From: Pavona decussata
Lineage: Eukaryota
Assembly (NCBI GenBank): GCA_977016875.1
Contig: CDRNST010000051.1
Span: 5,394,001 to 5,458,000, forward strand
Direction of reading: 5' to 3'
Length of the DNA stretch: 64,000 nucleotides
Shown here: positions 8,535 to 10,293 of the stretch, one piece after another
Layout of the letters: each line of letters begins with the position of its first letter
How positions within the stretch are numbered: the stretch's first letter is position 1
Translations under genes and position numbers: made by a program
The notes under the pieces: generated by a model
The model's database searches: none
What the model saw: the letters and a program-made list of their open reading frames with translations, nothing else
Told to the model about the DNA's origin: nothing

Positions 8535-8560
8535 TTGGTGGCTCCTAAAGGAGCCGTTTT
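8535..8560 (-). terminator. Histone-mRNA-type 3' stem-loop of the minus-strand gene
   Basis: Minus strand reads AAAAAC-GGCTCC-TTTA-GGAGCC-ACCAA, then GTTTGAAAAAG. The stem starts 25 nt after the TAG at 8581-8583. Confidence 0.7.
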
Positions 8561-8580
8561 TTAGGAGTCTAGTGATGACT

Positions 8581-9339
8581 CTATTCGTTGAATCTCTCTT
8601 TGAACTTGAGGGGCAACAGCTTCCCTTCCCTCCTCATGTTTGCCATTACTGGTAAGTGGCGTGGAAGCCGTTTTGTGCATACTGCCTCAAGCTCTTTCAC
8701 AGAGTCGACCAGCTTTAATTCTGCCACGGCCACAAAATCTCTAAGGGTGCTTCTCGGACAGCCGGTCAGTCTAAAAGCGTTGGCCATGCTGCAGCCATTT
8801 TCTGATATGGTTCGCAAAACATTTTGATAGCGGTCATGGATAGCTGCCAAGCTGTGTGTGCTGACGCAACCGGATTGCTGCTGCTGCTGTGGCTCGTTGT
8901 TGCTGCGCAGTGTTTCCACCTCTGCCTTAAGGTCTGCAATCGTCTTCTTGGCCTGCCCCAGTTTGGTGTGGAGGACCTTGATGGCCTATGACTTCGTCCG
9001 GACAAGGTTTGCCAGCTCTTCTCCATCTTTATTTGACTCTTCCAACTCCTCCTGATCTTCGTGCTGCTTCTGCTGGTTTTGCAACGCCAAACCTACACGT
9101 TCGTGCTTTCTGAGCAAGTTGTTGTATAACCTGCGGAGCTCCTTGTAGCCTGGCCTATCAGACAAGGAATGTTTGGAGGAGGACTGTACAGCCCTTTTCT
9201 TCTTCTTCTGAAGAGGTCATTCTGCACAGGAACACCGCCCGTTATCGCCGTTACACACACCACATTTGTTGGTACAATGAAAAATGGAATGCGGACTGCC
9301 ACAGATGATATACTTGAGAATGCGCTGAGACATTTTCAT
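8581..9339 (-). pseudogene. Merlin accessory gene: N-terminal Cys/His zinc cluster, coiled coil and C-terminal CCDC106-like domain (two in-frame stops)
   Basis: One frame runs from ATG 9339 to TAG 8581 (253 codons), with stops at 9217-9219 and 8986-8988. N-term IICGSPHSIFHCTNKCGVC..CSC. C-term RYQNVLRT..SMANAF..RSTL..VAELKLV..GKLLPLKF resembles CCDC106 as I recall it. Confidence 0.7.
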
Positions 9340-9590
9340 TTTCTAATCGTGTAATGATACCTTTGATTCAATCTGCGGCTTTTATACTCTCCTTTGGATC
9401 AAATTAACAAGTGTGATTGGTTGCATTATGCTTTTGTTTATTGGTCAAAGTAAATAACATTATAGTAATTAATAACTAACATTTGCATATGAATACTTTA
9501 CTAGTACAATAGGCAAATTTTCATTGGGTAGTTTTGATCCGACCGATGTTATAAAGGGTTAAACGTCGAACTAGACAAACTCATTTCATA
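9340..9590. promoter_or_regulatory. Compact bidirectional Pol II promoter (two TATA boxes, three CCAAT boxes, octamer)
   Basis: TATAAAAG on the minus strand at 9379-9386, ATTGG at 9416, 9440 and 9523, ATTTGCAT at 9481-9488, and TATAAAG on the plus strand at 9550-9556. The ATGs are at 9339(-) and 9591(+). Confidence 0.65.
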
Positions 9591-10249
9591 ATGAATCATA
9601 TCGAGTTACTTAACTTGATCCAGAGTTGCCATACCATTTTTACGTTCCTGGTCAATCATGGCTTGCTTGCAGCTAGGCATAAATGTCAATGAAGTCAAGA
9701 CATGGTTATAAGAGAGAAAGCCAATTCGGTAGACGAGTATTACTGGGAATGTCCAGTAGGTGGCAGAGGGAAGACTGTAGAGATCGATGAATCAATGTTT
9801 GGCCACAAACGCAAGTACAACCGTGGACGGATTTCTAGAGGCTTGTGAATTTTCAGCATGGTTGTAAGAGGCATTGGCAGGGCTCTCACCTTCCGAGTAC
9901 GGAACTGAACGAGAGAAACCCTGGTGACCGGACTGATACAGCAGTTCGTAGAACCTGGAACCAGGATTATCTCAGACCAGTTTTCACCATACTTCAACCT
10001 GAACCACGTTGGCTACATCCACCTCATGGTGAACCATTCAAAGAACTTTGTTGATCCATAAACAGGCGCCCACACAAACACCATAGAGAGACTCTGGAGT
10101 CAGGTGAAGAGAAAGCTGAAAGCAATGAACGGGACTCTACAAAGTGAACTGCCGGGATATCTGGATGAGTTTAACTGGCGCAATTTTACAGAGGCGACCA
10201 CTTCGAGAACATATTGGCTAATATTGCCGAATTCTACCCTCTCAACTAA
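9591..10249 (+). pseudogene. Merlin/IS1595-family DDE transposase (several stops, internal deletion; absent from the ORF track)
   Basis: Manual translation: MNHIELL..HKCQ*..YYWECPV / [79 protein letters not shown]. Confidence 0.92.
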
Positions 10250-10267
10250 GTTCACTTAGTTTAACAA

Positions 10268-10293
10268 CAAATGGCTCCTTTAGGAGCCACCAA
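10268..10293 (+). terminator. Histone-mRNA-type 3' stem-loop of the transposase gene
   Basis: CAAAT-GGCTCC-TTTA-GGAGCC-ACCAA, then purine-rich AGGAAATAAAG. The stem starts 23 nt after the TAA at 10247-10249. Confidence 0.7.

Follow-up and report, generated by a model that had tools for sequence, protein, structure and literature searches.

A 64-kb stretch of the genome of the coral Pavona decussata (contig CDRNST010000051.1; the whole stretch analysed is referred to as the window) contains a 3.3-kb Merlin DNA transposon at positions 8083-11421, each of whose two divergent genes is followed by the same hairpin, GGCTCC-TTTA-GGAGCC, with ACCAA behind it. An initial annotation had proposed that these are histone-type stem-loops. 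The twin motifs are confirmed to be genuinely present as claimed, and the reading of the hairpins as histone-type 3' ends is supported by their resemblance to host signals. We consider it probable that both are genuine 3' end signals of the replication-dependent histone type, carried by a coral Merlin transposon that is built like a histone gene pair. This reading is carried by sequence and structure, by the position of the hairpins, by their conservation and by their identity with host signals; protein binding, cleavage and coupling to the cell cycle would follow from it.

The 21-nt core of the motif, GGCTCCTTTAGGAGCCACCAA, has exactly two occurrences within the window, one at 8535-8555 (minus strand) and one at 10273-10293 (plus strand), and no match to it was found in 100 shuffles of the window, even with up to three mismatches permitted. 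No runs of N were encountered. Each copy lies sense to its adjoining gene remnant and shortly after a stop codon, as had been claimed, with 25 nt between the left hairpin and the stop of the accessory open reading frame (ORF; 8581-8583, minus strand), and 23 nt between the right hairpin and the transposase TAA (10247-10249, plus strand). Both distances agree with the positional definition of the Rfam histone signal Histone3 (RF00032), which places it roughly 20-50 nt past the stop of an intronless gene. Metazoan histone genes have stop-to-hairpin distances of 23-31 nt (bioRxiv 10.64898/2026.10.14.759114). The four signal elements of the window are as follows.

8535-8555, minus strand: histone-type stem-loop of the accessory gene, with the stem formed by 8550-8555 and 8540-8545, a UUUA loop, and ACCAA at 8535-8539 (RF00032, 34.1 bits, E 4.5e-6).
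10273-10293, plus strand: histone-type stem-loop of the transposase gene, with the stem formed by 10273-10278 and 10283-10288, a UUUA loop, and ACCAA at 10289-10293 (RF00032, 30.8 bits, E 3.6e-6).
8512-8529, minus strand: motif of the accessory gene resembling a histone downstream element (AAAAAGTTAATAACCAAT), which aligns with the host histone motif and with other Merlin lineages.
10297-10315, plus strand: motif of the transposase gene resembling a histone downstream element (AAATAAAGTCTAAACCAAT), identified by alignment with host histone signals.

The 25-nt versions of the two hairpins agree at 24 positions, the number given in the initial annotation, the single difference being the base immediately 5' of the stem, C on the left and T on the right, a CpG to TpG change. 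In a repeat search of the window the pair appears as a 28-nt inverted repeat, 93% complementary, with its copies 1703 nt apart. Folding of both copies agrees with the 6-bp stem, UUUA loop and ACCAA flank originally described, predicting at each site a hairpin of 6-7 bp (GGCUCC-UUUA-GGAGCC) with an energy of -11.4 kcal/mol on the left (z -2.4) and -12.1 kcal/mol on the right (z -2.8). A 6-bp stem opening with two G-C pairs and a 4-nt loop with U at positions 1 and 3 are also the structural hallmarks of RF00032. The 5' flanks are AAAAAC and AACAAAT, and ACCAA follows the stem at both sites; in histone mRNAs, flanks of this kind hold the SLBP contacts and the site of cleavage. The purine-rich stretches farther on turn out to be part of a longer motif, AAAG(T/C)..A(T)GA(C/T)CAA(C/T), common with host histone genes. 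The AATAAA reported right after the transposase hairpin is found at 10298-10303 (plus strand), within the right downstream element, and a second one, on the accessory side, lies at 8511-8506 (minus strand), directly after the left downstream element.

A search of the window with the Histone3 model matched both hairpins and nothing else of that kind. Measured against the curated gathering cut-off of 34 bits, this test, which the initial annotation had suggested, is borne out for the left hairpin, which just reaches it at 34.1, but not for the right one, which stays below it at 30.8. The lack of any Histone3 score, named there as part of a refuting outcome, was not observed. In a joint search, however, the host histone signals themselves scored 33.4-38.0 bits and those of other Merlin lineages 32.3-38.7 bits, so that a cut-off of 34 splits true host sites too. 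The family definition further asks for a replication-dependent histone gene, whereas the genes that carry the hairpins here encode a DDE_Tnp_IS1595 transposase and a CCDC106-like protein.

Comparison with the histone stem-loops of the host bears out the likeness. Host histone genes were located in the 602-Mb genome with the Histone3 model, and comprise tandem 6-kb arrays on C185, C479 and C96 together with dispersed H1, H2A/H2B and H3/H4 genes. The H1, H2A, H2B, H3 and H4 genes end in GGCTC(C/T)-TTTA-(G/A)GAGCC ACCA, and the transposon hairpin GGCTCC-TTTA-GGAGCC is identical to host histone hairpins, C-G top pair included. That top pair had been entered as a caveat, which falls because the histone genes of the host carry it as well. 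The host histone motif about 10 nt past the hairpin is close to AAAAGCAATGACCAAC, and a downstream element AAAG..ATGACCAA (also written AAAG(T)CAATGACCAA) is common to host histone genes and both transposon copies. Allowing at most one mismatch, the hairpin has 352 sites in the genome, versus none for the reversed control, and 18 of the first 100 sites listed belong to the Merlin family of the window. A host SLBP gene is present in the genome (G000:C90:1989241-1990067).

The signal is conserved well beyond the window. The transposase has its nearest named relatives in stony corals (Stylophora, Oculina, Acropora and Montipora), and the hairpin is kept in seven Merlin lineages from several corals, with 52-100% protein identity to the transposase of the C132 copy; the comparison left out the host genome's Merlin families of 34-43% identity. 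The lineages other than that of the window, with their identity to C132, are listed here, and each has both the hairpin and the downstream motif.

91%: Logan assemblies (L073-75), both genes intact (293 and 274 aa).
78%: subfamily of the host genome (C257, C93, C99).
77%: Stylophora pistillata (L076).
71%: Oculina patagonica (L092).
70% and 52%: ENA assemblies (L079 and L077, respectively).

The accessory-gene hairpin is kept wherever the accessory gene is present. In the other lineages the stop-to-hairpin gap is 15-25 nt, with the downstream motif after the hairpin, and one comparison of sister and related copies gave 18-25 nt. A Merlin relative of 41% identity (L078) has no hairpin and carries AATAAA directly after its stop, which argues that the hairpin is a trait of particular lineages and not a product of chance. 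Mean pairwise identity across the lineages is 95-98% for the hairpin with ACCA and, in the next 30 nt (+21 to +50), where the downstream element lies, 71% on the transposase side and 77% on the accessory side; it is 65-67% at the end of the coding sequence and 52-57% beyond +50 (54% on the accessory side and 57% on the transposase side), the level of the shuffled control. When 25 transposon and host signals are aligned, all 150 of 150 stem cells pair, neither the AA preceding the stem nor the ACCA following it varies, and compensatory changes are seen at two stem positions, including GGTTCC/GGAACC in the 70% Merlin lineage. The top pair is G-U in three of the 25.

The carrier of the hairpins is a Merlin transposon, an assignment made because an IS1595-type transposase, terminal inverted repeats (TIRs) and target site duplications (TSDs) occur together. 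The stretch is repeated in the genome, with at least 72 matches at 65-94% identity, and homology with sister copies spans 8082-8086 to about 11420, through and beyond both hairpins. TSDs of 8 bp, in keeping with the 8-9 bp that characterise Merlin elements, flank sister copies on C132 (CTCTATTC), C382 (CAAATATC) and C331 (AGATTTTG), and no recognisable TSD was found around the copy in the window. The remaining parts of the element are the following.

8083-8185, plus strand: left TIR, starting GGTAAAAGTGAAGAAC, 103 nt long and 74% complementary to its counterpart at 11319-11421, with sister-copy homology beginning at 8082-8086.
8581-9339, minus strand: remnant of the accessory gene, encoding a CCDC106-like coiled-coil protein, 252 codons with two internal stops.
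9340-9591, no strand: bidirectional promoter region, with a TATA box on each side, TTYGATCC 9 nt upstream of each, three inverted CCAAT boxes, and an octamer ATTTGCAT at about 9481.
9592-10249, plus strand: what remains of the Merlin transposase gene (IS1595/ISXO2-like DDE), which has lost about 212 bp near 9757 (relative to L002) and contains a frameshift, two TGA and one TAA.
10244-10261, plus strand: second conserved hairpin, over the transposase stop (AACTAAG-ttca-CTTAGTT), present in C257, Stylophora (L076) and Oculina (L092), and in L044 and L073.
10340-10677, plus strand: internal tandem repeats with periods of 49, 85 and 184 bp in the right arm, past the transposase 3' signal and short of the right TIR, present in sister copies too.
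11319-11421, minus strand: right TIR, the inverted repeat to 8083-8185.

The copy in the window is a dead relic in which both genes are broken, and is about 14% diverged from the copy on C132. The latter has an intact transposase ORF of 293 aa that matches PF12762 (DDE_Tnp_IS1595) at 3.3e-26, and the remnant in the window is 88% identical to it. The accessory gene is assigned from a 132-aa fragment of the C132 copy, which matches PF15794 (CCDC106) at 3.6e-7, and an intact accessory ORF of 274 aa is present in a related sample (L073). Both ORFs are short, intronless and continuous in intact copies. The promoter between them resembles, by its sequence motifs, that of the host H2A/H2B genes: four host H2A/H2B promoters (L030, L033) have TTYGATCC 9, 13, 21 and 30 nt before the TATA box, and have inverted CCAAT boxes as well. 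Host H3 and H4 promoters are without the TTYGATCC motif. The octamer ATTTGCAT on the transposase side is retained down to the 70% lineage. With its short intronless genes and a shared H2A/H2B-like promoter, the element is thus laid out like a divergent histone gene pair.

Several further features of the element were noted. An 11-bp subterminal repeat of the CTGTCGG type is arrayed in both orientations, with 11- and 22-bp periods, at 8102-8316 and 11314-11389; the arrays give rise to long palindromes in the TIR regions, and are probably transposase binding sites. Matches to microRNA models at 8102-8211 are artefacts of these palindromic repeats, with scores of 20-41 bits against cut-offs of 52-100. 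The second hairpin, over the transposase stop, is kept in the L073 lineage through a compensatory A-T to G-C change. One internally deleted Merlin derivative (L060; G000:C403:1198130-1198456) has its hairpins only about 215 bp apart and the look of a miniature inverted-repeat transposable element. In a copy of the 78% subfamily (L047; G000:C93:7628965-7632600, positions 2381-2428) the accessory stem-loop is tandemly duplicated; the two hairpins are 32 nt apart and the second has a G-U pair.

Merlin is not the only type of element with this ending. A pogo-like family (DDE_1 and HTH_Tnp_Tc5 domains), unrelated to Merlin, has the same hairpin and downstream motif 32 nt past the stop of its gene, about 240 nt inside the right end of the element. 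At least 17 copies are present, 91-100% identical (95-98% among the full-length copies examined in detail), and subfamilies that are 72% diverged also retain the signal. The loci involved (L018-L029, for example G000:C4:303891-304353) are young, and several have long open frames; what shorter pogo-like derivatives have in common with them is limited to the stretch between the hairpin and the end of the element.

At least two further families of repeated non-histone ORFs end in the same histone-type signal, and neither has a Pfam match. They are represented by L016 and L063 (G000:C93:2135876 and C10:497092) and by L031 and L034 (G000:C60:5231129 and C49:3720971), their stop-to-hairpin distances are 98-185 nt, and one of the two has a cysteine-rich, finger-like N-terminal part. 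A protein search with one unexplained hairpin-bearing ORF gave no usable match. A hairpin on C10, 2.1 kb from a member of a distant Merlin family, belongs to a different repeated ORF family.

In the pathway that makes histone mRNA 3' ends, SLBP binds the hairpin, the small nuclear ribonucleoprotein (snRNP) of U7 pairs with the downstream element, and CPSF73 cuts after ACCA, leaving an mRNA that is not polyadenylated and is limited to S phase. An active copy of the coral element would be expected to give two outward transcripts from the shared H2A/H2B-like promoter, each ending in the host's histone signal. Host SLBP would bind the hairpin, the U7 snRNP would pair with the downstream element, and the transcript would be cut 4-5 nt past the stem and left without a poly(A) tail. 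Transposase mRNA would then be made and kept in S phase only, like histone mRNA. This would be the time of greatest gain for a cut-and-paste element, since it can move from replicated to unreplicated DNA while the donor site is repaired from the sister chromatid. The AATAAA after or within both downstream elements would leave room for back-up polyadenylation.

A number of observations weigh against this interpretation. The right hairpin, as noted above, scores below the Rfam cut-off. No host U7 small nuclear RNA (snRNA) was found, either with RF00066 on the genome, where 65 of about 166,000 candidates were scored, or in three pattern searches, which looked for a U7-type Sm site together with either CTTT or the complement of the downstream motif. 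Matches to these patterns were at chance level and had no convincing 3' hairpin, and one was a histone 3' end read backwards. The Merlin family is nearly extinct in this genome, the sole intact transposase ORF found being that on C132, whose accessory gene is frameshifted. Contigs from public runs cover the whole element, including arms that are not transcribed, which gives them the look of DNA or mixed data and makes them uninformative on RNA 3' ends; they also end at the hairpins, since that sequence recurs in histone genes. Polyadenylation may be used instead of or as well as histone-type processing, given the AATAAA at both downstream elements. Finally, the identity with host signals could stem in part from repeated recapture or gene conversion and not from purifying selection.

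The penultimate of these points leads to the alternative that processing is dual or mainly by polyadenylation, in which the hairpin either binds SLBP or only slows or terminates transcription while most transcripts are cleaved at AATAAA and polyadenylated. Histone genes of some invertebrates are mostly cleaved at a nearby AATAAA and polyadenylated. The same arrangement of AATAAA as at 10298-10303 and 8511-8506 recurs in several other lineages, and one preprint cites Drosophila SLBP, U7 or LSM10/11 mutants that give polyadenylated histone mRNAs (10.64898/2026.10.14.759114). We nevertheless regard this alternative as unlikely. An A-rich downstream element can yield AATAAA by composition, the hexamer is not present in all lineages (the accessory side of C257 has ATAAAA), and 71-77% conservation is seen for the full downstream motif, which no pathway other than a U7-type one requires.

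Less likely again is that the signals are neutral passengers, captured once as a histone 3' end or gene pair, functionless since, and held identical to those of the host by gene conversion. Some 350 genomic copies of the hairpin could act as conversion donors for signals that do match the host's own, and in assemblies the contigs fork at the hairpin, into transposon and histone contexts. However, the position 15-25 nt past the stop is constant on both genes, one lineage has a compensatory stem change unlike the common host form, and a second transposon superfamily has gained the signal independently. Moreover, conservation across different coral genera is higher for the hairpin than for the coding sequence, and with everything beyond +50 decayed to background, a neutral island of 45 nt is not expected to survive.

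It is very improbable that the hairpins act as DNA-level palindromes, whether they served an inner mobile unit as its inverted repeats or were sites of protein binding or recombination on DNA: although the pair, separated by 1703 nt, does make up a 28-nt inverted repeat, and the initial annotation had allowed for their being the TIRs of an inner element, copies align across both hairpins to the true TIRs, with 8-bp TSDs outside these in C132, C382 and C331 and none beside the hairpins; elsewhere in the genome the hairpin is single and follows histone or other transposon genes; its asymmetric parts (loop, ACCA and downstream element) are always sense to the adjoining gene; and the same module stands after host histone genes and in the single-gene pogo element.

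We therefore favour the interpretation of both motifs as histone-type 3' end signals. To the broader proposal, that stony-coral DNA transposons of at least two superfamilies, Merlin and pogo, took over the histone 3' signal and that their mRNAs are the first non-histone substrates of SLBP and U7, unpolyadenylated and confined to S phase, we would give an even chance. To our knowledge, the textbook view is that histone mRNAs are the only animal mRNAs with a stem-loop end in place of a poly(A) tail. A full-text search of the literature found no description of histone stem-loops on transposon genes, nor of Merlin elements with such features. PMC4604434 describes replication-dependent histone mRNAs as the sole cellular mRNAs known to lack polyadenylation, and a 2026 eukaryote-wide survey of histone 3' processing makes no mention of transposons (bioRxiv 10.64898/2026.10.14.759114). 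If the broader proposal is true, these transposons mimic a class of host genes, in their ending and for Merlin also in their promoter, to time their expression to S phase, and this would account for the way in which some cut-and-paste elements tie their movement to replication. Studies of SLBP and U7 specificity would gain natural non-histone substrates, and expression of such elements would be overlooked in poly(A)-selected coral transcriptomes. With the young pogo-like family and the intact Merlin copies, the idea is open to direct tests.

The coral element can be compared with four known systems. It shares with the histone signal of RF00032 a 6-bp stem starting GG, a 4-nt U-rich loop, an A-rich 5' flank and ACCA, as well as a putative downstream element about 10 nt on and a location about 20-25 nt past the stop of a short intronless gene; it differs in that the signal is on the transposase and coiled-coil accessory genes of a mobile element. 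Like other members of the Merlin superfamily, which is related to bacterial IS1016/IS1595, it encodes a DDE_Tnp_IS1595 transposase about 290 aa long and has TIRs that begin with GG, an 8-bp TSD and many decayed copies, but it adds a CCDC106-like gene in divergent orientation, and both its bidirectional promoter and the 3' ends of its two genes are of histone type. With an H2A/H2B pair it has in common two short intronless genes placed head to head, a shared promoter of about 250-390 bp with inverted CCAAT boxes and GATCC ahead of both TATA boxes, and stem-loops at the two outer ends, whereas its coding sequences are unrelated to histones and the whole unit is TIR-flanked and mobile. Finally, the repression of human HERV1/LTR12 elements by U7 (PMC11417402) likewise links the histone 3' machinery with transposable elements; there, however, U7 inhibits long terminal repeats (LTRs) that bear matching motifs, while the coral transposon carries the complete signal as the 3' end of its own mRNA.

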